64,000 bases of DNA, taken from contig JALDTO010000155.1 of assembly GCA_023515725.1 (NCBI GenBank), positions 655,147 to 719,146 on the forward strand, written 5' to 3'. Each line of letters starts with the position of its first letter. Positions within the stretch are counted from its first letter, which is position 1. Shown here piece by piece: positions 6,430 through 59,757 of this stretch. Origin of the DNA: Amoeboaphelidium protococcarum X5. Taxonomy: Eukaryota; Fungi; Aphelidiomycota. Position numbers and translations under genes: made by a program. The notes beneath the pieces were generated by a model. It was given only the letters and a program-made list of their open reading frames with translations, ran no database searches and had not been told where the DNA came from.

Positions 6430-7611
6430 ATGGACTCTCTTATAAATAGTTAGATTACTGATTAGATTGCTTTTAATTCGCAACTTTCTGAGATTAGAGA
6501 ATGGTTGAAGCATAATCAGTTGCCGGATTAGGAAAACAATTTCACCTGTAACACCAGAGCCAAGTTATGGAAGCTATTACTTGGTGTCGATTCAGTATCT
6601 GCCACTGAATACAAGTCGTTAATTGGGAGAGGCCCCAGTTCATTTTATGAAAAGATCAAGAAGGATACTAATAGGACGTTTAAAGCTGACAGTGACTTCA
6701 AAAGCATGGTTGATGAGGGAAAGTTGATTCGCGTGTTGAATGCGTTCATTTGGAAGATTGAAGCAGATTGCTGGAATGATTAGAAGCATAAGTTTACGTA
6801 CGTTCAAGGCATGAATGTATTTGCAGGTATATTCCTATATGTAATGCCTGAGCTAGATGCATTCTATTGCTTCTTCAAATTCATTACTCAAGTATGTCCT
6901 CAGTATGTTCAACCACAACTTGATGGCGTCCATCACGGACTTGAGGTATTCGTGATTGACTCGCGTTGTTTCAGATGGAACATTAATTTTTTAATCACTT
7001 TTGAGAGTGTACTGTAGTTACTTGATGAAGCTCTAAAGGAATGTGATTATGAAATATGGAATCACTTTAAAATTCATAAACTCATACCACAGACATATGG
7101 GTTCCCGAGTAAGTTAAGTATTTAGCACTTAAATTTGATTGAATAATACGCGATTTGTAGCTGTCATGACCTTTTCTGCGTGTACGGAGCCACTGTCGCA
7201 GGCAATTTTGTTATGGGATTACTACATTGCGAATGGCTTTCACTGTAACATTGTATCAGCTATTGCTCAGTTTTAATTGATGAAACAAGATTTATTAAAG
7301 TCCTCAAGGTAAGATATGTTCCTAACACGTGGTCAATTTATTTTAATTCGCGTGCGGGTAGTCCAATGAAGCTGGTTCGCGTGATGCCTTCCCTGGATTC
7401 AAAAGCAATCATCGAGCGCATACCATTAATCGCGAGTACTATTTCTGATGACTTATGGAAACGCATTTGTGTGCACATGCGGTAGAGCAAATGCTTCATC
7501 AGTTACAAATCAGAGTCATCTGTCCATCCTTCCAGTGATGCACTTTAGGACATTGATGATTTAGTTATTTCAGACGATGATGGCAATGACCAGGATAATG
7601 TCTTTGACTGA
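6430..7611 (+). CDS. BUB2: Bub2/Cdc16 TBC-domain GAP (mitotic exit/septation network); introns 6946-7017, 7109-7160, 7309-7361
   Basis: RAKLWKLLLGV...GPSSFYEKIKKDTNRTF...LIRVLNAF...YVQGMNVFAGIFLYVMPELDAF...TFSACTEPLSQAILLWDY; splicing restores the frame. Confidence 0.9.
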
Positions 7612-8061
7612 CTGAATTGAAATGTATTTGTGATCGGGATCTCCTTTAAGGTAAGTGACGCTCTATTTGAAGCACATGTATAGGGAGCGCGCGATTTTCT
7701 TCCAATGGTAAACAAACGCCCCATGCCATGTACCAACTTTTTGTATTTCATCTGAAACAAGTAGGGATATGTATTTAATCTCCATCTCTATTCCTAATCG
7801 CATTAACTCTCATCCCAGCATTGTTGCAACTTAAACAGTAACCTATATTCTGTCTGCATCACTCAATCAATCATCACCATCCACACGACCGACCGGCAGA
7901 CGAACCAATAAACAAATCACAGCTTCAATTATTCTTTCACAACGCCACACAATCCTTAACAAATAATAGCACTTTTTTATTATCAATTAGTTCAAACAAA
8001 GCTTTATTTATCATAATTAATAGAACTATCAACATCATCAACATCATAATTTGGTTAAGAT

Positions 8062-11000
8062 ATGAGGATTACGGAGTTGAAACCAGTGGTGCCCTCATAG
8101 AATCAATAGTAGGCTAATCTTAATAAGTCTGCCACAGCTACTAGCGGTTCAACAACAGGGACTAAGGATGATAGTCTGCCTCGTACTTCCAACAGTCTAT
8201 AGAGATCTAATACTTCTAATGATAGTGGATTCAAGTTGAAACCTACTGGTTTGTTGAAGTAGTATATAGATTCTGATATTGGATCATCTACAGAGTCATT
8301 GTAAAAGTTGGAAGAGTCCCTGTCGTTGAGTTAGAACAGAAAGCAGTCTGGTAATATCAATGGATCTCAGTCTTCCGGTACCTACGTAGCTCGATCGTTG
8401 ACTAATCAACAAGGTGCATCAAAGCAATCTCTTTCTAAGGACGATAGCTCCGTGAGATTGAATGCTGTGAGCACTGTATCGCCGTAGAATGAAGTAAAGT
8501 CAAGATTGGCAGGTGGAGCATCTGTAGACAAGAAGGCTTAATCTAAACAGGATCGACCTTCTGATGCCAATAATAAACAAGATGGTTCATTGCGCGGTGC
8601 TAACAGTGGGAGTTAGTCCAGTATTAATAGTGGGCGTCAGCGAAGAAACACTGTAGATTCCATCTCTGAGAAGCAAAATGTTCGTAGCATGTAGTAATAG
8701 TAGCAATCCTACCAGGATGAACAGTTGCAGAAGAGTAAAGTTCGTATTTTGGGCACAGGTTTGATGGATCATCCGATGTTTGGTAGCTAAAACTTATCTG
8801 AAGTCACTGATGAGTATATTCAGAAGCGTCAATCCCCAAAGGCGTCGTAGAAGGATCTAAATTAGTCTTCAAGTTCTGCCGAGTCTACTTTTCAGCAGCA
8901 ACAATAGAAAAGTCTGTCCGCTTCGAGTAAGTAGTAATCGTCCCCCGTTGATGTTACTGAGCTGGTATCTAAGCGATTATAGGAAGAAGAGAAGGCCAGG
9001 TAGTAGTTGTCAGAGTTTAACAAGGTTCGCCAGAAAATTTTGAAGAAGAGTCGTGACAAGTTGAATGCTGGCTTTGATAGAAAGTCTTAGATTTATGGTT
9101 AGGCTAATTAGGCGCTGCTTGCAACTCGAACTTCTAATGGAAAGTTGAATGAAAGTTCCTCGTTCGCGCCACCTGTCTCAAGTAAACTGTCGCACTCTAT
9201 CACCAGTCTGGATATTAAGGACAATAAAGATGCTAAAAAGGTTACTGTGAGCAGTCAAGCTGAGCCATTGTCAAAGCCAATGAATCGCAAGGATTCCCCT
9301 AAAGTTGGAAGACAAGCAAGTTCGAATAACGTCAGGATGTCTTATGAGTTTATAGCTGAATAGGAATAGTATTAGGAGGTTAAAAATTTGCTCAAGAGTC
9401 AGTTTAATATTGCTGCATCAAGTCTTGAGAATTTACACAATCGAAAAAACTATGCTGGTAGAACATTTATTGTGGCAGCTATTGAACGTCAAGTATCCAG
9501 GAAATCCCAAGAGTTAGATTTTGATGAAGGAGATACTATGCTTGTCACTGATGCTACTCATCCAGAGTGGTGGGTGGCTCTTCATGAAGTCAGCGGTAGA
9601 AGTGGATTGGCACAGGCGTCGAAAGTCAAAGAGATGGAGTCATTTTTCGCAGAGATTGTCGCACTGGCTGAAGACAATGTTGATCACTTTGATAAACACG
9701 TCGCAGAATCAAAGTCATCCATGAGAAATTTGGGTGATAAGCGTAAAGATACAGAGATTAGTGGTATCATGGATTCTTGGAAGAGCTCTAGTGTGGGTGA
9801 TGGCCAAGCTGCTATGCCGGAGAATCAGTCTTGGGCATCTAAAGCTGGAGCTGATCTTGTCACCAAACTGGGCAAGGATGAGGTTAAGCGCCAAGAATCT
9901 ATTAGCGAGTACATTGAGACGGAGAAGAAGTTTTTGGAAGATATGCAGAATGTTCTTACTGGCTATGTGCAGCCTTTGAAGGACTCTCGGGTGCTGAGTA
10001 GTTTGGAGTTGCAGGAGATATTCTCCAATTTGCAGTAGATTGTTGATATAGCTCAGGTATTTCATCGCGATTTGACCGAGAGATAAAAGACGTCCGGCAT
10101 AGTTATAGAGTCTGTGGGAGATATACTCCTCAAGAATTTACCATCTCTGCGTGAGTTTGCACCGTTTTGTGCAAATATGTCTCGCTCTATTCAGTACATT
10201 TTGGATAAAAAGAAGGTATCGCAGCCATTCTGTGATAAGCTGGCCGAGTGCTCAAAGAATAAAATATTTAAGAATATGGATTTGAATAGTTTTCTGCTGA
10301 AGCCAATGTAGAGAGTCACGAAAATACCGCTACTGATTAAGGGTATTCTAAAGTACACAAAGCATGATAGTCCTGATTTCTAGAATTTAATGGAGGCCGA
10401 GTCTATTTCGCAGGAAATTTTGCTCTTTATTAACAATAGGTGTGGTGAATCTGATGAGAGGCGTAAATTGGAAAAGATCCAAGGCAAAGTTAATTTTGAT
10501 TTGACTAAAGAGATATCGCTGGATTTCTTTGAGCCGAAGAAGCGTAAAATTTTATATGGTGGTCCTGTGGAGTGCAATGATAAGAAGATTTTTGCATACG
10601 TGTTTGATGATGTTCTCTTATTCTTGCAGTACAAGCTAGTCAATAAGGTGGAAAGATATACTCTGTATCGCCCAATGATGAGTCTGTGGCTGATTGATGC
10701 CAGCGATTCTGAGAGTGATGTTGAAGATACCACAGTGTCTCGAAAAACTTCTCTGAGTGTGGCCAGAAATCTATTTAAGCGTCCATCCTCCGCTAAGCCA
10801 ATGAAGGATCTGTCAGCAATATTTCATATTCATGACCAATTGGCTGAAGTGACGTATGAGATATCCTCTCACAATTAGCGTGATAAAGAAATGTGGCTGG
10901 CTACGATTGAGGCTGCGTAGAAGTTATTGTAGACGTACTCTTGCTTTAGAGTTGATAGATTGAGATCTCTGCCTAATCTGCCACTCAATTCTTAGAATAT

Positions 11001-11940: not shown

Positions 11941-12071
11941 ATTAAAGATTGATGATAATATCAATGTCTGCTACTTGTAGATGTTGAATAATTTATGATG
12001 ATTGATGTAAAATGTGATGCCAATAGATATGGTCTTTGATGTTGATTCGACTGATTTTAATTAAACTACTT

Positions 12072-13030: not shown

Positions 13031-13577
13031 TCATCCAGCATATGCCACGGCTTTGATCTCAATTAGCAGCTTTGGCGAAGGGAGTTCTTTCACAGCCACA
13101 GTGGTTCGGGATGGTCCTACAACAACAAACTCAATGAATACTTTTATGAAATTTATTGCCATAGCGATATTAAAAATACCTGTCTGAGCATCAAAGAATT
13201 CATTGTAGACTTGGTTAAATTCCGCGTAATGCTTCATGTCCACCAGGAACACGGTAAGATCAACCACGTTCTTCAAAGTAGCACCGGCGCCTTTCAAAAT
13301 AGCTTCAATACTACACACCAAAATTGCAATAAGATTATCTTGAGACAGACTCAGATAGATTAAGTTACTTTTAAATGACTGCGCGCGTTTAAGCCTTAAT
13401 GTCCAAAGTGAGAGTTCCATCGGCATTCTCAATCACCCCTTCATACGTATTATCCAGACGACGTGATGAAATTCCAGACACGTAAATCATTCCATTACAA
13501 ATTCTAGCGTGCGGATAGCGAGCAAGCGCTGGTGCTCTATCCTGCATAATAATGGCTTTGCCGTTGATTTCACTCAT
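13031..13577 (-). CDS. RidA/YjgF-family protein, 2-aminomuconate deaminase type; 2 introns
   Basis: ALARYPHARICNGMIYVSGISSRRLDNT...VDLTVFLVDMKHYAEFNQVYNEFF...GPSRTTVAVKELPSPKLLIEIKAVA; the YPHAR/SGxSSRR/RTTVAV pattern matches the AmnD/NbaF-like subgroup. Confidence 0.85.
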
Positions 13578-13886: not shown

Positions 13887-15444
13887 ATGAGACAATTGAG
13901 AAATTTTTTTGACAACAATTTTGTGGAACCAAGCACTAAATGTTATATAGACTCTATTAATCCAGCGAATGGAGAGGTATCTTTTTTTTAAAGGTTCTGA
14001 ATGAATAGAATCGCTTCATGATTTACATCAAGTATGATTGTAGGTGATTGCTTAGATTCCGGATTCTGCTGCCGGCGATGTTGATAGCGCAGTATAAGCT
14101 GCATCGAATGCATTCAAAACTTGGTCCAAGACCACACGCTAGTAACGTTCAGATATTTTGCATAAGATTGCTGATGCGCTTGAGCAGAGATTAGTGGAGT
14201 TTGCGATGGCTGAGAGCCAAGATCAAGGTAAACCTGTCACGCTCGCTCTCAGCGTGGACATTCCCAGGGCAATATACAATTTCAGATACTTTGCTGGTCG
14301 TATTCTTTACTAGAATGATAAGAAGGCTGATCTTGATGGTGTGGCGATGAGTTACACTTAACGAGTACCTATCGGAGTAGCAGGTCTCATCAGTCCATGG
14401 AATCTGCCGCTGTACTTGCTCACATGGAAGATTGCGCCTTGTATTGCTTACGGTAATACTTGCGTATGTAAACCAAGTGAATTTACTAGTGTGACTGCGT
14501 ACATGCTTTGCGAAGTTCTACAGCAATGTCAGCTGCCAGCCGGTGTTGTGAATATGGTGTTTGGTTACGGACACACTGTGGGGTAGGCCATTGTAACTCA
14601 TCGCGACGTCCCTCTAATATCGTTCACTGGAGGCACAGCGACTGGCGAAATTATTGCTAGACTTGCGGCTCCTATGCATAAAAAATTATCATTGGAACTG
14701 GGCGGTAAAAATGCTAATATTGTATTTGAAGATGCGGACATGGACCAGTGTATTGCTACCACCATCCGATCAAGTTTTAACAATCAAGGAGAGATCTGTC
14801 TATGTGGATCTAGAATTCTCGTGCAGCGTAGTGTTTATAAGCAATTTGTTGAGAAATTTGTAGCCTTGATCAAAGACAATGTGATAGTGGGAGACCCTTT
14901 GGACCGCAGTCTGAATAGCGGCGGGTAGAAGTTGCATGTCGGAGCAATCAACTCTAAGCAGCACTTTGACAAAGTTATGTCCTATATTCAGAAAGCCAAA
15001 GATTTGAACGCGTAAATTGTTCATGGTGGCCACTCTATCAAAAACATCCATCCACAAGGCTTATTCATAGAGCCAACGGTAGTTTTAACTGAGCCATTGG
15101 ATTCCAAATTCTCTACATTGGATCATCAATCGTGCGCCTTATGTCAAGAAGAAGTTTTCGGTCCGTTTGTTACCATAACACCTTTTGATAGTGAGGAACA
15201 CGCTATCACTCTTGCCAATAGTACCAAGTATGGTTTGAGCGCCACTGTGTGGACTGAGAATGGCAAGAGATAGAGAAGAGTCGCCGAGCAACTGCAAGCC
15301 GGCACAGTATGGGTAAACTGCTGGATGACGCGTGATCTCAACATGCCATTTGGTGGTATGAAGCAGAGTGGACTTGGTAGAGAAGGTGGTGATTACTCAA
15401 TTGACTTTTTCACCGAACTGAAGACTATTTGCCTCAAGAATTGA
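13887..15444 (+). CDS. ALDH8A1: 2-aminomuconate 6-semialdehyde dehydrogenase (ALDH8A1 family); intron 13977-14043
   Basis: ESQDQGKP...VDIPRAIYNFRYFA, SPWNLPLYLLTWKIAP, LELGGKN, FNNQGEICLCGSRI, NCWMTRDLNMPFGGMKQSGLGREGG. Confidence 0.92.
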
Positions 15445-15567: not shown

Positions 15568-16130
15568 TCAAGCGTAATTTAGTCTGAACACGTCATTGAA
15601 CACGAACCAATTGCCAGATCCATCATTGTTCAGTTGAAATACTTGACTGAAGAATTATGGATTAGACTCATTGTCAACCTACACAACCATGCTCATAAAG
15701 ATCACCCGGATATAGAAACACTAAGATTAATAGTATTAACTTACCAGCAATTAACCAGTGACGGCAACTAAAATTGAATTTCCAGAGGTGTTTCCAGGCT
15801 GGACATCCACAGTGGTCACCTTGTGTGCAACTTTTTGAAATGGCAGACTCTACACGGATAGTGTGAACTCTCATCCAGTAAATAATTAGTATAAACTTAC
15901 CGATAGCTTTTCAACAATCTTGTCGCTGCCTTAAAACTCTTGACCTTCAAAAGTGAGCATCGACTGAGCTTTCTACAATATACATTGTGCACATAGTGAG
16001 AGTATTTCGCGCATCAATAATTAGATCAGCAGTACTGTCTTACGTATAGCGGTGCCAAGTTGGCGCGGGATGCATCGAAAGTGCTATAGTAGTACTTGAC
16101 AAATTCGTTAGCGATAGCTTTAGCGTCCAT
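15568..16130 (-). CDS. NTF2: Nuclear transport factor 2; 3 introns
   Basis: IANEFVKYYYSTFDASRANLAPLY|KAQSMLTFEGQEFQG...LPFQKVAHKVTTVDVQP...VTGQLL|VDNESNPQFFSQVFQL...FVFNDVFRLNYA. Confidence 0.95.
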
Positions 16131-17396: not shown

Positions 17397-18325
17397 TCAT
17401 TTTAACCGCGATTCAGCCAACTTTATCATATCAGAGTAATAAAGTTGTCGTATGTTAAAATTCCACATTTCATTATCCTTCTCTACGTCCATAGAGTCGG
17501 GAATTAAACCAGAATTCTGATATTGACAAAACAATTCAGCATCGGCCACCATGGAGCGCGCCACAGTTCGCGCATCAATCGATTACATTCTAGATGGCAA
17601 TAGAATAGAAGGTACCCACATTACAAATGGAAGCATTCTGCAATTTTCTTCGATCCACCACAGAGCTTTCATATGTTTCTATTCAAGTTTAGAGCTGGAT
17701 GCTTTCTAACCATCCTTATTCATCACAATCAGTCTCTACTGATACTCTTCAAATGGTCGTTTGATCCACGCTGGTTTTACCAAAGTGAGATGATCAAAAT
17801 CTAATTCTTTAAGTCCAGCCTCAGCTTATCCTTTCAATTTTAGCATAGTACGCGTAGAAGTTGATAAAGTATGAACATAGCTGAGATATGAAAAGTATGG
17901 AACTTTTGCATATTATTTGCACCAGTTGGCAAACCACAGCGGTATTCTCACATCGGCTTCGTACTGTTGAATCTCGCTTTATAGATTTGGCTAGCGATTG
18001 CCTATGGTACAGAAAGCCACGTTTATCATGTCGTCATTTCTGGATATCTTGACTTTATCAAATGCTTTATTCTGAGTCAAATCTAACTTGATATGCTCAA
18101 CTTTATCCAGAGACGCGTCAACATCATCATCAGACTTTCTACTCCACATTCCAGGCCTTAGGCGAGACATTTGTATTATTTCCGCGCATCTAGTAGATAA
18201 TTGTAATTCTTTCACTAAGCACTACCCATCGCAAGATATATATTGAATAAAAGTTTATAATAATTCACACTCACCTTTCCCACAGCTCCTGTACCTCCCA
18301 AAACTAAAGCTCGATATTTCATCAT
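17397..18325 (-). CDS. HTATIP2/TIP30/Fmp52-like NAD(P)-binding oxidoreductase; 1 intron
   Basis: RALVLGGTGAVGK|CLVKEL...VAFCTIG...LKLKGQAEAGLKELDFDHLTLVKPAWI. Confidence 0.8.
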
Positions 18326-19179: not shown

Positions 19180-20763
19180 ATGAAAAGTTTGATATATACT
19201 CTATTTTGGCCTCTGACGCTGTCTTCTCCCCTGTAGCTTATCAGCACCAATGGGTAATCTTCTACTAGCTAAGCTGGACTGATGCAAACACTATATGCTT
19301 CCGATGTTGCACAGCAGTAGCAGTACGACAGTTTTATGGCGACCAACTTTTCGATAAATGTTATTGATTACTTCTTTGACGGTGAAGTGCGTAATTTGAA
19401 CAAGTATCTATCTGCCCAATTTGATTTGATTCCGAAACAGGTATTACTCATATATCAGTCTTTGTCTTACACCCTATTTGCTTTATACTCTGTGCTGTAG
19501 AACAAAAAATTTGTTGAAGTTGATGATGTGAGTAATTACTATAATCATTCAGGATCGCGAAATTCGGAGTGGTCTCATGGGGATCTTGACTCGATCTGGA
19601 GCGAGTTTAAACTGATGGATCATAATAACGATACCAAGGTCACCAGACGGGAGTATGTGAACTACCTATCTGAGAAGATACCCAAAGAAGGAGCTTAGGT
19701 GGCGCCATCTGTGTGTTTGGCTACAGAAGATCGCATACGACGAATGTGTCTAGCTACAGTCAACGCGAACAACAATATTGATGGTTTGAACTTGGCGGTG
19801 ACTGTGCAACGACTAAAATGTTTCACTGGAATCTCGTCCGCTTTCAAGTACACTGCAGAGAGATGTGTTGCATAGGCGTAGTCTTGTTCTGCTGTTTAAA
19901 GCTGCTTTGAACACTATTATCTGTCCAATATTCCGGAAGATGTACTCATGCGCTTACCGAAACTGACTGGTCCACCAGCGAATGACACAAAGCGAGTCAT
20001 AGGAGAACACGTTGCGATTGGTGGTTACTATGCTGCGCTACTAGCAACTTCAATTGCTGGCTTTTTTATTGCCTTCCCCTATTCACTGCTCACAATGATT
20101 CCTACCACTACCGTTGGTTTGACTGGAATGATCATAGCTATTCCGCACCGCGTCAACACCAGGATTGCTAATAAGATGGCCCTCACGAAATGGGATCCGA
20201 CTAATGATGGATTCGGAATATTTGACAAGATTGCAAATAAGACCAACATTCTAGCTCCCAACCCGCCGCCACCTCCTAAGCCCGAGTGTGACGTGTATCT
20301 ATACTGGAGCCAGTCATGCGCTGCCGTCTCGTCGCCGGAGAGCAGAGTTTGCAGCGATGGAGGATCATTAGTGGTGCGAGATAGCTGCAAAACTCACTTC
20401 TCTGCCGCTAGTAAGTCATGTGGAAAGATGCAAAGTTATGGTTGTCATTCTTTGTGTTACAATTCTGAATTGAAATCATGCACCGGAAAATTCAATTACA
20501 TGGACATTCCGTGCTCTGCTGCTATTCCAGATGATCTTGATTCGGAGATAAATCCAATTTTGACCGTTGGCTCTTTTCGTCAATGTTAACAACTTTGCAA
20601 TGAATCGTTACAAAAGAATGACACGTCGTGTGATGCGTTTACTTTTATAAGTAGTGAATGGAATGAGGACACGTCTAAGTGTATCCTCTATGATGCGTCT
20701 CGCGCTCCTGATATGTTATCTTATCCTGCAGCCACTGGATGCGTATTTGCTGCACCCAAATGA
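19180..20763 (+). CDS. Secreted multidomain protein: signal peptide, EF-hand, hydrophobic hairpin, Cys-rich and PAN/apple-like C-terminus; intron 19441-19500
   Basis: MKSLIYTLFWPLTLS; FKLMDHNNDTKVTRREYVNYL; about 40-aa hydrophobic stretch; PNPPPPPKP linker; CQQLC...CDAFTF...CILY. Confidence 0.7.
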
Positions 20764-21772: not shown

Positions 21773-22938
21773 ATGTCATTCACATCTAAATATCAAGAAT
21801 ATCTAGTTAAGAATACTGTCAATGACTTTTCAGAGTTTATAAGTGAGCACAAGAAGTAGATAAAAAAGCAAAAGAAGCCTGTATTGATGGTAAGTTGATA
21901 GTTGAAACTTATGTGAGTAATATTTGATAACGCAACCACATGTAGATTGAATTTTTCAAAGAATGCTTGTAAATTTTTACGTCTGAACTGGAACTTAATG
22001 ATAAATGGCGGACTGTGCCTGAATGTTATCTCTATATTGCAGCCAAGGTGAGGGACCATACCAATGCTCTTATGATCAAGGATGCCCAATTCCAAATCAT
22101 TCTGGCATTTCAACTTTTGCGATCTCTCTTCACATTAAGTAAATCTGTCAAACTCCAATTTAACTAATCTTTGCTGAAAGGCCATGGCACTTTGGATATA
22201 TTTTTGCCTTACCATATCGAAGAGCTATTTGGAGTGATAACCACGTACTTTAGTTGCAACTTCTATGGTGAATCTGGTGGTAATGAGTCTTTAAGTTATG
22301 AACACGAGCAATAATTTCTGGACAGAATACTGAAGAATTCTACATACTCAGAGGGTAGATTGGAGCAGCTGCATCGGAATTTGGAGAGTAAGTTCTCAAC
22401 TAATCTCTTTTCACCTGCCAAGACACAGCCTGGTAAGAGAATTAAGTCCTCAGGCAAGTAGTAGCATTCACACAGAAGAAAGTTATTGGCTGATTCTGAC
22501 CTCAACTGCTCCATTAATGAGAGTCTAATTGAATCTAATGCTGGTAAGTAGCGCGACACATTAAAGACTAATCTATCTAAAGTGTAAACAATTACAATGT
22601 CAAAAGTTGTCAAAGCTAAGAACCAGTCTCCCACCGTAAAGAGTAGGCGTTCAGATAAAAAAATGCATTTATTCAGTGCGTCAAAGTTTTATCATCAAGG
22701 TGATCAGGCACAGGCTAACAAGAGGAAGCGGCTGTAAGATTTATTCGTCTCTGAGACTCCAGTTAAATTATCAGCATAAAAATCTCACCCTAGTAAAAAG
22801 AAATTTCAAGGCTCATTGATTAATGAGAATGCAACACCTGATAGAACAAGACCAATCAAGTCTGGGCTCTTTGTTGAATGCACTCCCATTAAGAATTTTC
22901 AAGAGTTGCTCGCTGCTGAAACGCCATATGAAAAGTGA
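21773..22938 (+). CDS. Probable Sld3/Treslin DNA replication initiation factor; intron 21890-21945
   Basis: IKDAQFQIILAFQLL resembles the Sld3/Treslin core helix (IRExQLQIIL); C-terminus rich in CDK-type sites (VSETPVK, ATPDR, VECTPIK, AETPY). Confidence 0.55.
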
Positions 22939-23254
22939 CACGCTGATGATTAAATTGTATACTACTAAAACTTAGTAAACGAGAAATCATAGTATTGCTA
23001 TCGACCAAATTTCTGAATCTATACGCTATAAGACGACAACGCACAGTAGAGATCTTTCACAAGCCTATGTATACCATTCCATTCCATCATTCAATCATTT
23101 ACTTTAATCGCAACGAGAGCATTAGAGGGGAGCTTTTACCTGTAAGATTCACTCATATACTCGCTCGCTGGCTTTAGAAAATCTGATCATCTCCAGTCTT
23201 ACGTGTTTACCTCAAGAGCATCCGTTATAAAAATATCATTAAGCAGTATTTGGA

Positions 23255-24294
23255 ATGATGGCGAGTAATAGTATGTTATTGGGACGCGTCAATCTCCGCT
23301 GGCTGTGACTTAGACTCTGATGGTTTGTGACGCTATAAGGCAAATGTATCCAGATGATGATGTACAAATAGAAGTTAAGCACATCAAAACTACCGGAGAT
23401 AACGTACTTGATGTGCCTCTAAATAAAATTGGGCAGAAATCTTTGTTTACCAAAGAGTTAGAAGTGGCTCTTTTGAATAAACAAGTGGATTTGGTTGTTC
23501 ACTCTCTTAAGGACGTGTCGACCACTCTGCCAGACGTTCTCCATGTGGGAGCTGTTTTAGAACGGGAAGATCCGCGCGATGGGTTGATCTTACGCGCAGA
23601 TCATCCACTTACCACAGGTAAACTGGAATCACTTGTCCACCTGCCTGCTGGAACTGTACTGGGAACTTCATCTGCCCGTAGACTTGCTTAGCTGATGCAC
23701 ATGTTTCCGCAGTTGCAATTTAAAGATATTCGTGGAAATCTAAATACGCGCTTACATAAGTTGGACACTCTTATGAAAGAGTAGCCAGATGATGACTAGT
23801 ACGCGTACGATGGCCTAATTCTGGCATATGCTGGAGTTAAGCGAATGGGATGGGAGAGTAGAATTTCTCTTGTTCTTGAGAGTGATGCCGCCAGGAGTTA
23901 GTAGCCAGTTTTGTATGCAGTTGGTCAAGGCGCGTTGGCAATAGAATGTAGAGCGGAGGATATACGTGAAAATCAGTTTATCCGCACAGTGTGTGAGAAG
24001 TCGACGCATAAATCAACTTTGATGCGCTGTACCGCCGAGAGGACCCTGATGCGGCGATTAGAAGGCGGATGTTTCGTTCCTATCGGTGTTCATACATCCT
24101 ATGACTCTGGTGATAAGCAGCTGAATCTTTGTGCTGCAGTATGCTTTGTTGATGGAGCATAACGAATTGAAGCGTAGATGGTAAGGAAGTGCGATTCACT
24201 GGATTAAGCGCACCTGCTCGGAGATGAAGTTGCACAAGACTTACTTGACAAAGGCGCATCCGCTATATTATAATTAGTTTCTAGAAATACATGA
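23255..24294 (+). CDS. HEM3: Porphobilinogen deaminase (hydroxymethylbilane synthase); start codon unresolved
   Basis: YVIGTRQSPLA...KTTGD...KSLFTKELE...VHSLKD...GTSSARRLAQL...IRGNLNTRL...YAVGQGALAIECR...LEGGCFVPIGV. The nearest ATG (23255) is one base out of frame. Confidence 0.9.
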
Positions 24295-24909
24295 ACTTAT
24301 CACTTTTTGATGTTAATTTGCAATGGATAGGTTTTTTCTCACTACCTTAATCAGAGTTTTGAAGCTGTGGGTAAGCGGTCTAATATTTAGAATATCCATC
24401 TGAGAAATTCTAGTCGTTAGAATGTGAAAGTACAGCGAGCAGGTAATTTCAGCAAACCTGAAAACAACTTAGATATACAATATTAAGCATGTTGAATCAC
24501 CCAGAGCAATTAGCGAATGCGCAGCATGAGTATTGATGTTGTCTGCGCGCATTTTAATAGCTAAACACTGACTCGCGCGGACTTACTTAGAGTTAACTGA
24601 GCGATTCCATCAGCTAGAATGGAACAGCACATCAAGTAGATAACTTGAGCACAGTTGGAAACTACTTGGATATACACTTTTGACCATACTGAATTTCCCT
24701 ACGCAGTAAGCGAATGCTTACCATGAGTTTTACCGTTGTGAATGAGCAGTTTGACATTGAGACGCTTGCAGTGGCGCAATGGGCGGCTGCGCGTTGTCAA
24801 AACTGGAGTTCTCGCGGCTCTTAAAGTGTCACCAGTTAGTCTTTGACCGTATTCAAAACTACATCTATTCTCCAAAGGTGAATGTTTCAACATCACTCCT
24901 CATAACGTC

Positions 24910-24975
24910 AGACACTTTAGCCATATTTTATGGCTAATCTTTTGACTTTAGCCAGAAAATGTGGCTAAAGTATCT
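24910..24975. repeat. Nested palindrome built from four alternating TTAGCCA/TGGCTAA units
   Basis: Outer arms AGACACTTTAGCCATATTTT and AAAATGTGGCTAAAGTATCT pair at 18 of 20 positions; inner TGGCTAA...TTAGCCA. Confidence 0.75.
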
Positions 24976-26047
24976 CATCTTTCGAGGCTGCCGAATTCGC
25001 ACTTGAAGTACGACTTTATAGATTTTTGATGGTCGACTTCATAGTTCTATCAAGTCCTATAGTGTTGAGAATGTTATAAGGTGGCACTATAGTTGACTGA
25101 TTGAGCCGTAATAGCCGCGCATGGTCAAAACTGAAGTTCAAACACCGGGAACAGGGTCACAGCTTAATTGTGGGTCATTTTCATTGGTACCATTCTGATG
25201 CGCATTCAAAAATATACCTCCTCTCTAAATATTAACGAGTTATAACGGTGAGCATATGCGGGTTTGCGAAGTCTGCCAAATGACCAGAGTTGTAAATAAT
25301 CTCGCTGATGCGAGCTCACACAAAGCCAATTGGCTCTAGCTTAGATTGAAGGAGAGCAACTCAAATTTTACCACTGAAAGTATAGACATTTAATTAGCTA
25401 CTATTTCAGACTATAGACTGAATCCAAAATTAACTAAAAGAATGACGCAAGGAACAGCACTGGGCGACTGTAGTCGTCAGAGCCAAATGGCCCTGATGCG
25501 CGCTTAGACAGGTAATCGAACATTTACAGATGGCTGCTGCGAGTTCACCATAATGTTAACAGACAAAAGCATGGAATAAAACACTTTGTGGAAAGTTTAT
25601 AACATAAAGTTTTTTAACATCGTCTTAAAGGTTAGAACAATGTGACTCATGTTAAGAGTAAAGTAAGAGGGTGAAGTAAATATGATATACAGTATACCAA
25701 GTATACAGTATGTATACTTATTTAAAATCCTGTTCGATAAGAAAGCAGCGTGAGTGCGTGAAACGCGTCAATGCAGTTTCATCTCAACACTGTTAACTAA
25801 CGAAAACTCCCAAGTTGATGAATAAATCGCGGCAAGTCTCAAGACACATCCAAAGCCTATGTGTGGCACGCAGCAACCATGCCCGCTGTGCTCTTCCGTA
25901 GTTGAGTATAAGTCATTGTCTATCTTCAAACCTTTTCCCATCAGTATTCTATCTCTAACCGACATAGAGTCCAAAGACGCAAAGCTCGATAAATAAGATC
26001 ACAAAGCAAATATATTTATTCAAACTACCAGCGATACATCATGCATC

Positions 26048-27381
26048 TCATAAACCTGCAATCCCACTCAACATCTCAATGTCACGCGTGCACATTTGCA
26101 AAAACTCCTATTCTGACATTTGACTTGCCAACTTTGCGTGTCCGAAATCAATTAAGAGCAGCTAATCTCCCTTCCACATTATATTACGCGGTGCAACGTC
26201 ACCATGAGCTACGCCATTTTAATGAATTGACTATAATGAATTAATCAACTGCGAATAATGTGCTTTTATGTCAGCCACAGTAGATACACGTTCCAAGCGC
26301 TCTATCATTATCGCCTCAATCCAGCCATCAATCGACAGACGCGCCAACAATCTCGGAATGACAGTACCTTGCAATCTAGATAGCTTCAGATAACATTAAT
26401 TCTCATAATCGATGGCATCTACTTTTAAATGTTCTGGATCCTTGGTAGAATCAGCCATTTTCAACACCAACTAATGCGATCTAATTTCGGTTGGCCTATT
26501 ACCATCGGATCTAAATAAAGTATGGATACCACCAAAGACTACTGAAGACAAATCAGAACCGCCAACAACTTGTTCGAAATATACTTCATGAAGGTTGACG
26601 CTCTCAACTACGGAAAGGTCAAATTCATGTTTGCGCATCATAACAGGAGTGGTGTATGGAGACGCGTACATGCATTGATCTTTATTTTCACAGAGCTAAA
26701 ACATGGCACATACAGCCTCCATCAACGTGAATGGCGCATTTTAATCACGATGCACGGCGCTACTTACCTCCAACTTACTTTACTATCTCCCATCAAATCC
26801 ACCTCGACGCAGAAAGAAGAACTTATCAGCCGTACAAATTATTCCATATCTGTTATGATTAACAGACATGTAACCATATTCTTGCCGCAGCACCTTTTTC
26901 TTAATCTCGCCTTAATGAGTGAAATCAACAAGATCATCATCCACATCGAAAGCCCACATTGTCTTGATCTCAATCGGCAAGATGCAGCGGCAGCTAGGGT
27001 CGTCCCAATACTACAAAATAAGATCAGGATGGAGCCCCACAGCTGGAGTGATATCTTAATGAATCACGGACCCACCCAAGGATTAGTTAATGAATTTAGC
27101 AATAAAAAAACGCGATCAATCAGATAATGTTTTACAGTTGCCTCACTACCGACCATGACTGTACGCTAGTCAATTTTAATTTGGCAATCCATATCCAAAT
27201 GCGGCTATGTATATTTCCTATATGGTATCATGACATCTTGATCAAAGGATTTCCATAATTTCAACTCAACGCCCACCAATTCACGAGGATTACTGGGTGC
27301 AGATAGCTAGGTATCGGTGCGCTTTGAACTGATCACTGTGCTCGCAGGTGTATGTCGCAATAAATCACGCAGTAGAGTCAT
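26048..27381 (-). pseudogene. Crinkler-type PD-(D/E)XK nuclease plus protein kinase fusion; single -1 frame break at 27103-27110 (pseudogene, assembly error or programmed frameshift)
   Basis: HPDLIL...LPIEIKTMW...QEYGYM...YGIICT (nuclease); LVLKMAD...ENQCYLKLSRLQGTVIPRL...HGDVAPRNIM...LIDFGHA (kinase). Confidence 0.75.
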
Positions 27382-27732
27382 TATTAATACGATAATTGGT
27401 AACAATGTGAAGAGAAAAGAAAGCGAATTAATTGAAGACTGGCCAATCCTTAGCGGTGATTGGACGCATCGCAGAGTTGCCAATCGCTGACAATGCGCGT
27501 GTTTTCGTTGATAAATACGGGGCCTGAGTTTGCACTTTAGCGCTCAAGTTGAGACAAAATCTGCGCTGGTAGATTCTAATTAGATCGCGCGTCGTCGTTC
27601 GACTTTTCCTGATCGACACGAACGAACGTTGCGACAACGACAGTTTGATTTTGATTTTGGTTAGCAATCCGTGTTCAATCTATTTACCAGTAATAAGACA
27701 GGATAGAAAGCTGTAATCTTTATAGTAATAAC

Positions 27733-29531
27733 ATGCCCCAGATGAGTACCGAAGCAGTGTAAGTATTCGTGTATAATTTACGTTTGGTCAATTTCTTCCA
27801 TTGGTAAACCCATTTGTGTAGAGCTGATTTTGGATTAATTGGTTTGGCCGTTATGGTATGCTCACTATATATATGTGTTTACATGACTCTCAACTTGAGG
27901 TTCAATTAATAAAACGCTCTGTCTATGTAGGGTCAAAACTTGATTTTGAATATGAACGATCATGGCTATGTGGTATTAATACACGCTCCAAATTGAAGAT
28001 AATGACATGAACTTCAATTGTTGTATGTAGGTGTGCGCTTACAACAGAACCGTGGAGAAGGTTGACCATTTCTTGCAGAACGAAGCCAAAGGTAATTATC
28101 ACGTCATTTATATAGACTTAGAATCCAAATCTTAATTTTATACGCTATTGTGTGGGTAGGTACCAAGATTGTTGGTGCACATAGTATTCAGGAGTTGTGT
28201 AAGAAGTTGAAGCGTCCACGTAAAGTGATGCTCTTGGTCAAAGCTGGACAGCCTGTTGATGACTTTATTCAGCAGTTGGTGCCATATTTGGAGAAGGGTG
28301 ACATAATTATTGACGGTGGTAATTCGTACTATATAGACACCATGAGACGCTGCAAGGACTTGGAGTCTAAAGGCTTCCTGTTCGTTGGCTGTGGTGTCTC
28401 TGGCGGTGAAGAAGGTGCTCGTTACGGCCCAAGTCTGATGCCTGGTGGTAGTCCTGACGCATGGTATGATATAAAAACTCTTTATCTTTTTGATAACAAT
28501 ATGCGCTATTGTATCGCTATCATTTTTTTGTATGTAGGCCTCATCTTAAGCCAATTCTGTAAGCTGTGGCTGCCAAGGTTGACGGAGAACCGTGCTGTGA
28601 CTGGGTCGGTGAGACCGGAGCCGGTCATTACGTCAAGATGGTCCATAACGGTATTGAGTATGGTGACATGTAGCTGACAGCTGAGGCTTATCATCTGATG
28701 CGCGATGGATTGAAGATGACTTATGATGAGATGGCTGCCACTTTTGTCGAATGGAATAAGGGAGAATTGGATTCGTTCCTGATCGACATCACCAAGGATA
28801 TCTTGGCTTATCGCAAGGATAGATAGCCTCTGGTGGAGAAGATACGCGATGCTGCCGGCTAGAAAGGTACTGGTAAGTGGACCGTGCAGAGTGCCCTTGA
28901 TTAAGGCACTCCGGTGACGCTAATCGGAGAGGCTGTGTTTGCTAGATGTTTATCATCGTTGAAGGATGAGCGTGTTCGTGCCAGCAAAATCTTGAGTGGT
29001 CCTGAGAATCAATTTTCTGGTGATAAGAAGCAGTTTGTGGAAGATATTCGCCAGGCTCTGTTCGCCTCAAAGATCATATCGTATGCTCAGGGGTTCATGC
29101 TGTTCAGAGAAGCTGCTAAGGAGCACAAGTGGAATCTCAACTTTGCAGGTATTGCTCTGATGTGGCGTGGTGGCTGCATCATTCGCAGCGCCTTCTTGAA
29201 CGACATCAAGAATGCTTTCATGAAGAATAAGCAGCTAGAGTGCCTGCTGTATGATGATTTCTTTAAGAATGCCATCAATCGCTGTCAGATGTCATGGCGC
29301 CGTGTTGTTTCTTAAGCATCACTAATTGGTATTCCTGTGCCTGCGTTTAGCACTGCTCTAGCATTTTATGATGGGTACCGTACCGCACGTCTGCCTGCTA
29401 ACTTGATCCAGGCTCAGCGTGACTATTTTGGTGCTCACACGTTTGAGCTAGTCGACCAACCTGGCACGTATGTCCATGAGAACTGGACTGGACGCGGTGG
29501 AAATGTCTCTGCCTCCACTTACAATGTGTGA
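27733..29531 (+). CDS. GND1: 6-phosphogluconate dehydrogenase, decarboxylating; introns 27759-27821, 27856-27930, 27973-28030, 28092-28159, 28464-28537
   Basis: [11 protein letters not shown]|GQNLILNM...IDGGNS...[19 protein letters not shown]...[15 protein letters not shown]...AGQKGTGKW...[11 protein letters not shown]. Confidence 0.98.
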
Positions 29532-30583: not shown

Positions 30584-30795
30584 GATAGCTGACGGATAAC
30601 CAATAAGTATATAATAATGTATAAACAGCGTATATCAGAATCGTTCTCTCAAAGTATACGGAGCAGACTGAGATTCAAAGCCTGTACTGTTTTCGACTGT
30701 GTATGTTTGTACCAAACACTATATGTATGTACACAAACACTGGAGCTATATATCCGAGTGTATGTGAGTGTATACGAGAGGATATATAGACAGAA

Positions 30796-30812
30796 TATAT
30801 ATATATATATAT
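30796..30812. repeat. (AT)n microsatellite
   Basis: ATATATATATATATAT run upstream of the kinase gene. Confidence 0.6.
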
Positions 30813-31407
30813 AAAAATGAATGTATGAATAAATGATGTTCTTGTTCTAAACAGAGAGAAGGAGTGAGTGAAGATGATGAAAGATGGTGAGATGCGGCAG
30901 ATTTGTTTTGTAAAGATCCATTTTGTGTCGGAGAGATCATTTAGGCTGTTCCAGACTGCATCGGAGATTCTGTGGTGACTCACTCCGACCATAAAGGTCC
31001 CGCAGACGATCCATCGCGATCCAAAATCTGCGGTGATTCACAAAAAAGGCCGATCAAGATAAGCGAGTATCTCGATGAGAGTCATCTCAGTCCGGGCGGA
31101 TGTCGTTTTGAGGCTGCGGATTGCTGGTCTGGGCTTTCGGCTCGGATATAAGTGTGGGAATTACGTGTGAATGACCATAGATTTTTAGATGATGATATCC
31201 ATGGTGGAATTACTTTTACATCATTGTGCGACACGATTAATCACTAACTTTATATTTCCGAGCGTTTGTTTGTTCGACGATCGATTTTGAAGATCACTTG
31301 CAGATTCCACCAAGATTTTAGATTGAAACAGTTACATTAATCGCTGGAAGTGTATAGTGTGATATCATTATTTATTAGCCAAATGTTGTTCACTATTAGG
31401 ATATACT

Positions 31408-35932: not shown

Positions 35933-37265
35933 TCAATCCCAGCAATTACTAACGCATCCTTGACTCCGTTCACAGTAAATCTACATCATCTTAGCATTAG
36001 AATATAATTATTCCAAAAGAAAGTTATAATCTTACCTCTGAAAATCCACAAAAACCAAATCTACTACAGCATAACTTGTTTGGGCAATCATTAAACTCGT
36101 CGCAAGTATATGGCGCAAGAGTACTTTAAACGTGGTTCACAGTGGATGTAAAAGAGAAGGTGGCACTGAGTTCAGTAGTAATCAGACTAGTCAAAGTGAT
36201 CAGTGTACCAGAAGGTTCAGGATTAACTTCCGGCTCTATAGTCGACGTGAACACGAAAGGCACACTAAAAGTAGTGGGAAATTCCAGAACGGTTGTGATG
36301 GGAAGCAGAGATCGACTCACGGTACTAACAATTGTCTCCGTTCTCGGTTCCAGCGTCACAGTCCGAGTAAGAATAGGAGTATCAATCACAGGAATATCAG
36401 TCTATGTTATCGTAGTAGGAGGCAGTTGAGATAATGACGTTGAGGTTTAGATTACCGTCACTGATACAGTCTGAGTCTGAATTTTAGTTTGAGTTTGAGT
36501 CAATGTTTCAGTCGGAAGTTGAGTAGGAATGGTAGAGGTGGAGGTAGTGACAGTTCCAGAACACCCACTAACACATCCATTTTCAGGTAGACAATAATCT
36601 GGAGTGATTCCACAAAAACCAATAGCGCCACAGCACCAGCCATTAACATTACATAGCTAGTTACCAAACTGAGGTCCGCATTGGTAATTTGTCGGGAGAC
36701 AAGCACCAAAATCAATCTAACAGCCTTGATTGATATCACAGTCTGAATCCCCGACACCACAGAGATTATCTGCATTACAGCATGTACCGGGTGGACACTG
36801 TCCTTGACCGACACCACATTACTATGCGACAACAGATACATTACGCGACGGTGAAGCGGCTCCAGGTAGTGGTCTGAACACAAGTTGAGTTTTCGGGAAG
36901 CAGAAGCCACCGCTAAGCTATCGATCGCAGTTGATACCACAAGAGAATGGGTCAGTGGCACAGAATCCAGCAGTATTACAGCAATCTGTCTAACCTCTAC
37001 AACTAGTACTCTCAGTTGAAGTACTTCCACACTAGTCTGCATTCTTATAGCTATTACAAAAACCGTATCCAACTTTACAACCCCTGCCACAGTACGCATT
37101 ACCCGTTCCACAAAAACCTCTAGATGAACAGCATTGAGGGAATTCGCATGTCATATTGCCACGACCACACTCAGCAGCATCGGAGGAGTGAACAGAAAAT
37201 AGCAGCATCCACAAGCAAGAGACTAGGATATATCGAACAAGTGTCCTAAGTTCCATTATCAGCAT
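35933..37265 (-). CDS. Secreted chitin-binding protein: five hevein/CBM18 modules and a Thr/Pro-rich linker; 1 intron near the 3' end
   Basis: Signal peptide; repeated CC-S/N-xxG-F-CG...C...GC modules (QCCSSRGFCGTGNAYCGRGC, WCCGAIGFCGITPDYC, LCCSRFGFCGFSE|IYC). Confidence 0.85.
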
Positions 37266-37971: not shown

Positions 37972-38058
37972 AGAAAAATACAAAAAGTAAGAAAATCATC
38001 ATCATCCTTGTTATAGAATCATACTTTCACATCCTAATATATTATCATTTGTCTGTAG
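37972..38058 (+). promoter_or_regulatory. A-rich PAB1 leader followed by a probable 5'UTR intron (37987-38058)
   Basis: AGAAAAATACAAAAA|GTAAGA...TCTGTAG|AAAATG; 72 nt, same size and GTAG end as the coding introns. Confidence 0.55.
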
Positions 38059-38061: not shown

Positions 38062-40008
<1,947 letters not shown>

Positions 40009-42445: not shown

Positions 42446-43012
42446 ATGATCCGTGTCGCGTTTTAAACAACTGTTGGGGATTTCATGGTGGAGCTGTACC
42501 GAGAGCACGCCGCCCAGACTTGTGATGATTTCGTACAGTTGATATAATCAAACTATTACAGCGATTCTTACATTCACAGAATTATACAGGTAAATGATAT
42601 TATGACGTGTAAATAATTAATGAATGATTTTTTATCCCGATTGAACGTGTAGGACTATATCTTACAAGGTGGCATGCGGTTGTAAGACAATGCTGAAGAC
42701 TCCGATGAGTTCAGAGAAAAAATCGAGTCGTTTCATCTGGGATAGATCAGTAAAGATTTGAAGCATACAGGTGCTGGGGTTTTCGGTCTAGTCAGAGATG
42801 AGACTACCGGTAAATTTAGTGGTCAGTTTTATATCACGCTTGCCCCGACACCATCGCTGGATAGGAAGCAGGTGATTATTGGACGCGTCTGTGAGGGGAT
42901 GAAAGTTGTTAAAAAACTGTCTCTCCTTCAGACTGATGCAGATTATGTTCCTGTTGAGGAAGTAAGAATTATATCTGCCACCATTGATAATCAAGACACT
43001 TATGAACCATGA
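42446..43012 (+). CDS. Cyclophilin, PPIL1-like, with degenerate active site; intron 42590-42652
   Basis: TTVGDFMVELYREHA...HRIIQ|DYILQGG...DLKHTGAGV...QFYITLAPTPSLDRKQVIIGRVCEGMKVV. Confidence 0.85.
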
Positions 43013-44971: not shown

Positions 44972-45345
44972 ATGGTATGCTTAGAGATAATTTTGCTATT
45001 TTTAATCAAGTTTATTATGATTTAATGTAGACTGCTCTGTTTAATTTTGAGTCTCTATTGTTAGTCATTTTGCTGAGTATATGCACTCTTACGTACGTCA
45101 AGTATCAGTTCCCCTCGCTCCTCCCAGATTCCAAGTATCGACCTACTCCAAACAGTAAAATTATTCTATTCTTCTTGACATTATCTAAATTTAACAACAT
45201 CCGTATGGTTTTTGTAGATGATATTACTAGCACAGGTGGCGTGTTTGGTCTCATGTGGAAGTTGGCGCGAATTGGTGAAAGGTTGTCGTTCTACGTGGCG
45301 CTGTGTTGTATCGTAATGTCTGTACGAATACTTGTAAAAGATTGA
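44972..45345 (+). CDS. KSH1: Protein kish (TMEM167); introns 44975-45030, 45155-45217
   Basis: M|TALFNFESLLLVILLSICTLTYV...GVFGLMWKLARIGERLSFYVALCC. Confidence 0.92.
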
Positions 45346-54229: not shown

Positions 54230-54677
54230 TCAAACTTGAGTTGCTGTTACTTTGGACGGACGAGCAGAGGGGATAAACCATAGAAGTATGTACGCGAATC
54301 CTATGGCCAGCACCACTATGGACAAGACGAGAATGTACACTGGCTGCATCTCTAGCATGAGAACACCGACAAAAACGTAATACAGTCCCCTACCAAGTAA
54401 GTTATTCAAAAATCCACAATATTCAACTACAAGAAATCTCAATTTAAACTCGGCCATAAGAATAGTGACTCCAAACAGGATCCCATAAATGCCCAAGACG
54501 AATCTACACGTACGGACGTCAGTTGTAACATTAAATATACTTTAGACGTGGGATTTCCCAAAGTCATTACAATTTAAAACTGCCAATGCCAGATATTATC
54601 TATAATATTCCCAAGACTAACAATAAAACTCCGACGAATACATTGGCCACTGTATAAAAGATATCCTTTTTCAACAT
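54230..54677 (-). CDS. TVP15: Golgi membrane protein Tvp15 (COPI-associated); 1 intron
   Basis: MLKKDIFYTVANVFVGVLLLVLGILQI...FVLGIYGILFG...EF...YCGFLNNLLGRGLYYVFVG. Confidence 0.8.
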
Positions 54678-56591: not shown

Positions 56592-56672
56592 TATTTACAG
56601 CAAGAACACCTCCTCCCGGTTCAGCAAACAAGTTTGTGGATTAATTGAAACTCGACGCTATTTACAGCAAGA
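56592..56672 (-). promoter_or_regulatory. Two identical 14-mers TCTTGCTGTAAATA containing the PUF element UGUAAAUA, downstream of the protease gene
   Basis: TATTTACAGCAAGA at 56592-56605 and 56659-56672 on the + strand. Confidence 0.5.
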
Positions 56673-56828
56673 CTGCAGGCGATTGAGCCAACAAGTGCTG
56701 GTGTAAAAGAGAAAATACTCAGTAAAACAATACAGTAGTTAGTATACAAATATCATATTTCAGTACTATACATTCACTCAAGTCAATCAAACAATCATTA
56801 CAGGGCACGCGTCAAAGTAATCAACAAA

Positions 56829-58241: not shown

Positions 58242-58574
58242 AATTGAAATAATTGAATGCAAAGATATGTCAATGCTGTGATAGCAGTAATAATAAGGTT
58301 GTTGTTGATAACAATGGGAAAGAGAGGGCAGGTGGGCGAAACGACAAAAGTGATAAAGGTTTCGGACGTTTCACAAGATCGCGTGATCTCCTCGGCTGGG
58401 CAGTCCGCGTTTCACCGCATCGATCGAATAGAGGGGTGGGCGATGACGGTGCAATGACAAAGAAGGTGAAACTGTTTCACGCGCATTCCTCCCTGTATAA
58501 TGATACTCGTATTACTAAAAGTTCGTATTCAACTTTATAATCATGATTACGTCTACATACCTATTTCACCACAT

Positions 58575-59757
58575 TCAACCGTACTTTTTTATTTCAATGT
58601 TGTTCATTTGCTCTAGTGCCAATTGCAGAGACTGAGTTCCAAGTCGACCGTGACCTTGAGCTTTTAACGCACAGTACAATTGATGAGCCAATGCGAGTCC
58701 TACTCAAATTTCAGTTAAATCACAAGCAAGATTGGAATCCATTTAAAAATAAAGAAACTTACCAGGTAATGACAAGCCAAGGCGTCGTGCTTCATCTAAT
58801 GCAATCTCCAAGTCTTTAATGAAGTGTTCCACATAGAAGCCCGGTTAAAAATCTCTTTTCAACATTCTTGGACCATAATTCGTAAGAGACCAACTTCCTA
58901 CAATATTATCAGAAGCGAACATCGGTGCAACTATAGTACAAAATATAAGCTTACCAGCAGCACCGGAACCAACGGCTTAAATGACAGTGTTCAAGTCCAG
59001 ACCAGCCTTGTGTCCATAAATTAGAGCTTCCACTAAACCGACCATCATTGTGCTTATCAAGATTTGGTTTACCATTTTTGTGTGCTGACCGAAGCCTGCC
59101 GCACCACAGTAAGTCACATTCTTGCCCATAGCTTTAAATAGCGAATCCAACTGAGACACAACATCTTACTCACCACCAGCCTACACAAAATTGACAATAC
59201 ACAAGAACTTGATCAGTTAGGTGGTAACAGCTTGTTGGTCAAATTTACCATAATAGACAGGGTGGCATTGCGCGCACCAACATCACCACCACTAACTGGC
59301 GCGTCAACAGCGAATATGCCTTTCTCCTAACATACCGATGCAATCTATGAAGCAAGAGATGGCTTGCTAGTAGTCATATCTACAACCACAGATCCAGCTT
59401 TTAAGTGATGAAGAATTCCATTCTCTGCATCAAGATACGTGGATTCGACATCAGCAGGGTAGCCAACAATAGTGAAAACTACATCAGACTACTAAGCGAC
59501 CTCTTTAGCTGAATCAACAACCTGAGCACCAAGTTTTTCCAATGGCAGAGCCTTTGCCTTGGTTCTACATAGGTAATGCGCACGAAAATTACAAAGCGTT
59601 TTAAATGGAGAATTTGCATAATAAACCTGTTGAAAACTGTCATGTTCTTGTAGCCATTATTTATTAAATGCTCACACATATAGCGTCCCATAACTCCAGT
59701 ACCAATCCAGCCAATTCTCGACGCCTTGCTTATTGTCACCATTTTGTTGTCAGACAT
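58575..59757 (-). CDS. 3-hydroxyisobutyrate dehydrogenase-like beta-hydroxyacid dehydrogenase; 4 introns
   Basis: [10 protein letters not shown]; [10 protein letters not shown]; VDMTTSKP; [11 protein letters not shown]; [10 protein letters not shown]; [12 protein letters not shown]. Confidence 0.93.

Follow-up and report, generated by a model that had tools for sequence, protein, structure and literature searches.

Introns of the alga parasite Amoeboaphelidium protococcarum almost always end in an extended acceptor, (T)GTAG. Here we analysed a window of 64,000 nucleotides (nt) from strain X5 (GenBank assembly GCA_023515725.1, contig JALDTO010000155.1, forward-strand positions 655,147 to 719,146; contig C155 in our numbering), which has a homeologous second copy on contig C214 that is 91% identical. 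The Mir1 piece of the window has 100% identity to A. protococcarum proteins. All introns were placed from genomic sequence, homology, comparison of the homeologs and published protein models. We re-derived 26 introns in the window; their ends are TGTAG (22), GGTAG (3) and AGTAG (1), exactly the tally reported in a first-pass annotation of this DNA, and the six introns that it quoted as examples run from GT to TGTAG between the same coordinates. The introns are 51–75 nt in length, with a mean GC content of 31% and GT..AG termini in every case. We regard it as virtually certain that the (T)GTAG motif itself is real, and genome-wide counts together with conservation between homeologs uphold the earlier proposal of an extended (U)GUAG acceptor that is under selection across the genome.

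The first-pass annotation described GTAG as invariant, which is true of all 26 window introns but not of the wider set: in 68 intron copies from two assemblies, T occupies position −3 in all 68 and GTAG is present in 67. The exception is the homeologous copy of the third intron of NTF2 (window 15679–15744), which ends in TTTAG and has no alternative boundary. A few AT-rich GTAAGT..GTGCAG stretches, one homeologous pair among them, also look like introns, and rare GCAG introns probably exist. Owing to these two observations we describe the motif as near-invariant. Between homeologs, acceptors differ in 0 out of 25 cases at −3, in 1 out of 25 at −4 and in 2 out of 25 at −5, versus around 22% of positions in intron interiors, a sign that the extension is under purifying selection.

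Tests of the intron boundaries

GTAG makes up 5.1% of NNAG words, which excludes chance as the source of 26 out of 26. A self-trained gene finder in which positions −6 to −3 were not modelled (acceptor-blind) ended 26 out of 29 introns with GTA donors and lengths of 48–85 nt in GTAG, including 12 out of 15 outside the window, and none in CAG. Several of its non-GTAG calls were dismissed as false introns, with odd donors, lengths of more than 100 nt, and AAG or GAG ends as frequent as YAG. Enumeration, in which every GT/GC × AG pair was scored against orthologues (intronless or with the intron elsewhere) or bacterial homologues, ranked the GTAG boundary top in 16 out of 16 tested introns, a few by thin margins. 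The identical procedure applied to 62 Prp8 introns from 16 loci of other eukaryotes returned GTAG in 6 and CAG in 39 (63%); G was the commonest base at −4 in these controls (24 out of 62, 39%).

Model-free counts across the genome compared acceptor words at intron distance from a donor word (50–79 nt) with those further away (160–189 nt), and were used in place of a test of donor-to-NNAG spacing on 124 kb, which was underpowered. After GTAAGT, GTAG occurs 1,911 times near and 1,015 times far (excess +896, z = 16.6), and CAG 3,967 times near and 4,288 times far (−321). After GTAAGTW, the corresponding counts are 1,857 and 1,912 for HTAG (−55) and 167 and 248 for TGCAG (−81). GTAG is thus the sole word in excess among those counted; AT-rich intron interiors can hide a small CAG class, which these counts bound and do not exclude. 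Dividing 896 by 11/48 suggests, very roughly, 4,000 introns in the genome. For HIBDH, cyclophilin, hevein and kish, GTAG ends give the intron lengths that follow from published sister-assembly models, which may share a trained bias.

The second intron of kish is ambiguous from homology alone. An alternative at 45135–45230 with a CTAG end is closer to the homologues in length and scores higher against them (213 versus 202), and all four published copies use the GTAG boundary and carry an insertion of 11–12 residues. On either side of this insertion lie a GT and a CTAG that are in frame and unused; the boundaries may have shifted towards a GTAG, or the intron may be alternatively spliced.

Intron anatomy and a standard-code relative

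A consensus of GTAWGTT...(G)TGTAG was derived from 48 introns, comprising the 26 from the window and 22 from outside it that had been pre-filtered on GTA/GTG donors. T is found at −5 in 43 out of 48 and G at −6 in 22; on the donor side, A is at +3 in 45 and G at +5 in 30. The earlier description of the remaining anatomy also held. Donors are ordinary (26 out of 26 window introns are GT..AG with a GTRAGT-like donor), there is no pyrimidine tract (the pyrimidine fraction is 0.57 both near the intron end and in the interior) and there is no consistent CTAAC-type branch site (CTAAY in 3 out of 48). YTRAY occurs between −36 and −6 in 23 out of 48 introns, at no sharp position. In the last 30 nt upstream of the acceptor, the 26 window introns contain no YAG, against 10.5 expected, and RAG is not depleted. 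GTAG is therefore the first YAG to follow the branch region, where any other YAG is evidently still a hazard, so G at −4 acts as a competitive advantage and not an absolute key.

By every feature examined in the sequence, the introns are U2-type: they have GT..AG termini with a GTRAGT-like donor, a pyrimidine at −3 and YAG exclusion, and the genome holds components of the major spliceosome. A U12-type assignment was rejected, as the RTATCCTT donor and TCCTTAAC branch site were not found in the donor table. The interiors of the 48 introns showed no similarity to one another, and terminal inverted repeats were absent (mean end complementarity, 4 out of 12).

A tree of Mir1 placed a metagenomic protein near A. 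protococcarum, with weak branch support. Most genes of the 59.7-kb contig that encodes it (ERZ19026233 scaffold_211) end in TAA or TAG, and the contig has at least 14 genes in common with the window; from this stop usage and the synteny we take its source to be a relative with the standard code. It is very intron-poor, with strong micro-synteny, and should serve well as an outgroup when the code change is dated. No entry under the names A. occidentale, Paraphelidium or Aphelidium appeared in the homologue lists. Most window introns are missing from its orthologues. Its six homology-fixed introns, among which those of AP-mu and CK1 were placed by frame and by the motifs of these proteins, end in TATAG (two), TTTAG (two), AATAG and TGTAG; a seventh, candidate intron ends in TGTAG. 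The relative thus has TAG in 6 out of 6, T at −5 in 5 out of 6 and G at −4 in 1 out of 6, versus G at −4 in 26 out of 26 for A. protococcarum (Fisher P = 3 × 10−5). The lone exception in A. protococcarum, TTTAG, is an acceptor form of the relative.

A. protococcarum reads TAA and TAG as glutamine, and its Prp8 and U2AF1 frames are open only under this code. The first-pass annotation suggested that the acceptor had co-evolved with the code change. That suggestion fails for T at −3, which predates recoding because the standard-code relative already ends its introns in TAG, mostly with T at −5, and survives for G at −4 alone, which on this two-taxon comparison appears to be confined to the recoded lineage. 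Coding TAG density is 15.5 per kb in A. protococcarum versus 3.95 per kb in the relative. The density of coding GTAG in A. protococcarum is 4.16 per kb, which is back to the TAG level of the relative, so a single extra letter makes up for decoys having become four times as dense. At synonymous glutamine codons, TG|TAG is under-used (odds ratio 0.40, z = −3.4).

Splicing machinery and a proposed basis of the extended acceptor

U2, U5, U2AF1, U2AF2, SF1, Prp8, Prp18, Slu7 and SDE2 are present in the genome. U2AF1 has alanine where Schizosaccharomyces pombe has Ser34 (serine in 32 out of 35 representatives), and further changes F22N, R32T and L36Q. Ser34 contacts the U at −3, and Ser34 mutants alter the choice of base there (PMC7505975). 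The gene (L040:951–1592, − strand) is intronless, has an insertion of around 17 residues in the UHM, lacks an RS tail and was matched in a single copy, though most genes have two. In the alpha-finger of Prp8, both copies carry S1512N, M1513S and K1517N (human numbering), beside F1509; these three positions are invariant in the 80 best metagenomic matches (80 out of 80) and in five aligned structures. In human, F1509 stacks on the base at −4, best on G (preprint 10.64898/2026.08.05.741260), and the yeast equivalent of Q1522 reads −3 (10.1101/212811). The conserved loop of Prp18, which abuts −3 and −4 (10.1101/212811), reads AAILH versus SVGIH in yeast, so that four adjacent residues differ, on a thin background comparison. 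The Prp18 and Prp8 genes lie around 20 kb apart on both homeologous contigs (C207 988731/1009279 and C264 1244019/1224193). U2AF2 is diverged, scoring 136 bits against a cut-off of 310, with a match that begins only at RRM2; its RRM1 piece matched no U2AF65 structure, a weak blank given that the piece has only 54 residues.

The branch-pairing region of U2 small nuclear RNA (snRNA) is canonical. The commonest intron end, GUGUAG, repeats the six letters at the start of the U2 branch-pairing sequence (identity, not complementarity), which is probably a coincidence. The U5 score is just at the cut-off. U6 was found neither by Rfam search nor with an invariant-core pattern allowing three mismatches, and both blanks are uninformative; U6 may have diverged, may contain an intron or may be absent from the assembly. 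A genome search for FAM32A was also blank, but its control was silent too. Because Prp18, Slu7 and SDE2 are present and FAM32A is reportedly metazoan-specific, loss of docking factors is unsupported.

The first-pass annotation had proposed altered machinery. Its proposal agrees with lineage-specific changes in or adjacent to the known contacts with −3 and −4, namely S34A in U2AF1, those of the Prp8 alpha-finger and, probably, those of the Prp18 loop; it needs revision in that other YAGs apparently remain visible to the spliceosome. We give roughly an even chance to an account in which the branch site is chosen first and the first YAG is taken, docking has a strong preference for UGUAG, the restriction to TAG is old, and G at −4 became fixed together with recoding or later, which let acceptors win over exonic TAG. 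On this account, the 3′ end of ordinary U2-type introns would have been narrowed twice, starting from YAG and arriving at (T)GTAG. TAG, mostly as TNTAG, would already have been in use in the clade under the standard code, as suggested by the one relative; G would then have been taken up at −4 in the lineage that recoded TAA and TAG to glutamine. The spliceosome would still pick the first YAG past a degenerate branch site, as the exclusion of YAG upstream of the acceptor indirectly suggests, and the acceptor would have to out-compete exonic TAG words made fourfold denser by recoding. G at −4 would provide the strongest docking beneath the Prp8 alpha-finger, as published for human, and the substitutions in the alpha-finger, the Prp18 loop and the −3 pocket of U2AF1 would most likely sharpen the preference for UGUAG, substituting for the lost pyrimidine tract. 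The order of events, the decoy load as cause and the role of the substitutions are the parts that we infer. We also put forward, as a tentative idea, that reassignment of TAG flooded exons with the clade's only acceptor word, and that the docking site (Prp8 alpha-finger, Prp18 loop and U2AF1 Ser34 pocket) and thousands of introns co-evolved one more letter, such that the code change rewrote the splicing code.

Several observations weigh against the two-step account. S34A loses the hydrogen bond to the U at −3, and the expected direction of its effect is ambiguous. F1509 and Q1522, the direct contacts of Prp8, are unchanged in both copies. Prp8 breaks 41 out of 568 otherwise invariant columns (7%), with the alpha-finger as one of four clusters (P ≈ 0.01), and general divergence may therefore explain the alpha-finger changes. 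In the antisense control, the odds ratio for TG|TAG also falls below 1 (0.69). The link to recoding is a two-taxon correlation with a single relative and six to seven introns; the comparison covered introns and coding words of the relative and does not date the protein substitutions against the two steps.

A less probable alternative is that selection acted only on introns: the machinery would keep the slight, universal bias towards G at −4, the introns, being short, without a tract and weak in their branch sites, would have drifted to the strongest acceptor, and the protein changes would be incidental. G is already the top base at −4 in control eukaryotes, one TTAG end and probably some GCAG ends are tolerated, the upstream exclusion implies that other YAGs are still seen, and the conserved contacts and general divergence of Prp8 fit as well. 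However, a rise from around 40% to 67 out of 68 demands very strong selection at thousands of sites, and changes fall on −3/−4 contact surfaces in three separate proteins. Early reading by the U2AF heterodimer is unlikely, and could act jointly with the two-step account. UGUAG (GU-rich) would be bound, instead of a U tract, by U2AF1 with its finger remodelled and by U2AF2 with RRMs that have degenerated, as Caenorhabditis elegans U2AF reads UUUCAG. This reading would suit the tract-less introns, the four U2AF1 changes, the diverged U2AF2 with its unmatched RRM1 piece, and a T at −5 that lies outside the known docking contacts; yet U2AF1 in the solved complex holds −3 to +1 and not −4, and the blank for so short a piece counts for little.

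Base pairing of UGUAG with a changed U6, U5 or U1 snRNA is very unlikely. The missing U6 and borderline U5 would accommodate it, but U2 pairing is canonical, known reading of 3′ splice sites is not Watson–Crick and no complementary snRNA stretch was seen. Still less credible is an introner origin, in which one transposon family happened to end in TGTAG: the absence of most window introns from the relative's orthologues is what such insertions would leave, but the 48 interiors are dissimilar and lack terminal inverted repeats, ends are conserved while interiors decay, and the kish intron directly after the ATG, which we take to be an old position, also ends in TGTAG. We give next to no credence to boundaries having been picked for their resemblance to GTAG. 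The higher-scoring CTAG alternative in kish and a trained bias common to published models would favour such an artefact; the model-free counts, the acceptor-blind methods and the control on other eukaryotes speak against it.

Window introns, known systems and significance

The window introns end in TGTAG unless stated otherwise. On the + strand, the first intron of Bub2/TBC (6946–7017) was placed by frame and by Pfam TBC matches on the exon pieces, with TGTAG also in the homeolog; its second (7109–7160) and third (7309–7361, GGTAG) introns, and that of a secreted EF-hand gene (19441–19500), were placed by the acceptor-blind finder and supported by homeologs. The ALDH8A1-like intron (13977–14043) was found by blind enumeration against an intronless orthologue, in which an in-frame TTAG 12 nt downstream scored lower, with homeolog support. 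The intron of a putative Sld3-like gene (21890–21945), presumed to match that of the first-pass annotation, repairs the reading frame, and the homeolog has it too. Five GND1 introns were placed by enumeration against bacterial Gnd (12 sequences for the first): 27759–27821, 27856–27930, 27973–28030, 28092–28159 (GGTAG; CGTAG in the homeolog) and 28464–28537, all with homeolog support. The intron of the PPIL1-like cyclophilin (42590–42652) agrees with the 63/64 nt implied by published models and is represented by four copies; this gene (42446–43012) looks divergent, and its nearest match in the PDB is spliceosomal PPIL1/Ppi1. The first kish intron (44975–45030), which directly follows the ATG, is supported by published models and the homeolog, and the second (45155–45217) is used by all four published 84-residue models.

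On the − strand, blind enumeration with homeolog support placed the first RidA intron (13311–13368), the first (15973–16043) and second (15850–15900) introns of NTF2 and the HTATIP2-like intron (18222–18274, GGTAG); the third NTF2 intron (15679–15744, TTTAG in the homeologous copy) was also placed by blind enumeration. The second RidA intron (13117–13179) is the top GT/GC × AG pair against bacterial RidA, by a thin margin over a GC..GAG pair, and is supported by the homeolog. In the hevein/chitin-binding gene (35981–36035), sister-assembly lengths of 55 and 65 nt match the published models, and the TVP15 intron (54504–54570) is supported by the homeolog and Pfam COPI_assoc. Blind enumeration and homeologs support four HIBDH-like introns: the first (59565–59626, GTTTAT..TGTAG), the second (59181–59248), the third (58898–58954, by a thin margin over a GC..AAG pair) and the fourth (58700–58762, AGTAG; GGTAG in other copies). 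Together they total 236 nt, the length implied by the sister assembly's model.

Outside the 26, a candidate intron in a 5′ untranslated region (37987–38058, + strand, GTAAGA..TGTAG) ends 3 nt before the PABP start codon, and a second with a TGTAG end (59818–59877, + strand) lies upstream of an F-box gene. Elsewhere in the window, 2570–5272 and 23094–27582 are missing from the homeolog; 2732–4162 (− strand) resembles, by eye, a relic of a hAT-type transposase, and the frame at 26048–27381 is broken. A conserved, non-coding-looking stretch at 30690–31340 differs by indels between the homeologs and has no match in Pfam; it is possibly a structured RNA.

Compared with the canonical U2-type YAG acceptor of fungi, animals and plants, these introns share GT..AG termini, a pyrimidine at −3, upstream YAG exclusion, a canonical U2 pairing region and the machinery; they differ in having almost only T at −3, G at −4 in 67 out of 68 and T at −5 in around 90%, whereas the controls have 63% CAG and 39% G at −4. 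Reading of TAA and TAG as glutamine is common in the group to which spirotrich ciliates belong. The GTAAG..TAG introns of these ciliates share the TAG end, but no fixed −4 base is reported and an extended signal was found to be inconsistent (PMC1805493). C. elegans likewise has short introns with a lineage-specific extended consensus, TTTCAG, in which T is conserved at −5 and −6 with CAG, and not GTAG with a fixed G (PMC2483917). CGCAG in intron-poor regions of Ostreococcus lucimarinus has a purine or G at −4, but as a notably weaker preference; there −3 and −5 are C, and the branch site is strong (PMC2483917). Introns of Yarrowia, Trichomonas and Giardia, also in intron-poor genomes, combine rigid 3′ ends with the lack of a pyrimidine tract (PMC2483917); we rejected this anchored class, as its strong branch motif is fixed 2–4 nt from the AG, whereas here CTAAY occurs in 3 out of 48 introns and its position is not fixed. 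At human NAGNAG sites, the site with G at −4 wins through Prp8 F1509, independently of docking factors, a bias that is limited to competing sites in human and near-fixed genome-wide here (10.64898/2026.08.05.741260). A survey of 50 species listed five acceptor exceptions, none of (T)GTAG form (PMC2483917). Our literature search, which did not take in the description of this genome by Mikhailov et al. (2022, Current Biology), returned no account of a (T)GTAG acceptor, which does not imply that it is unpublished.

It is an open question how, given a consensus of just three letters, a 3′ splice site is chosen; contacts at −3 and −4 are under active study, and U2AF1 Ser34 is a cancer hotspot. A. 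protococcarum offers a natural test case for this choice, in which a near-fixed UGUAG and natural substitutions at the contact surfaces provide ready-made alleles for tests in yeast. The motif is also of practical value for the annotation of these genomes. If the −4 step tracks the recoding of stop codons to glutamine, it would tie the evolution of the genetic code to that of splice signals, and a parallel tightening of acceptors would be predicted in other lineages in which TAR encodes glutamine.

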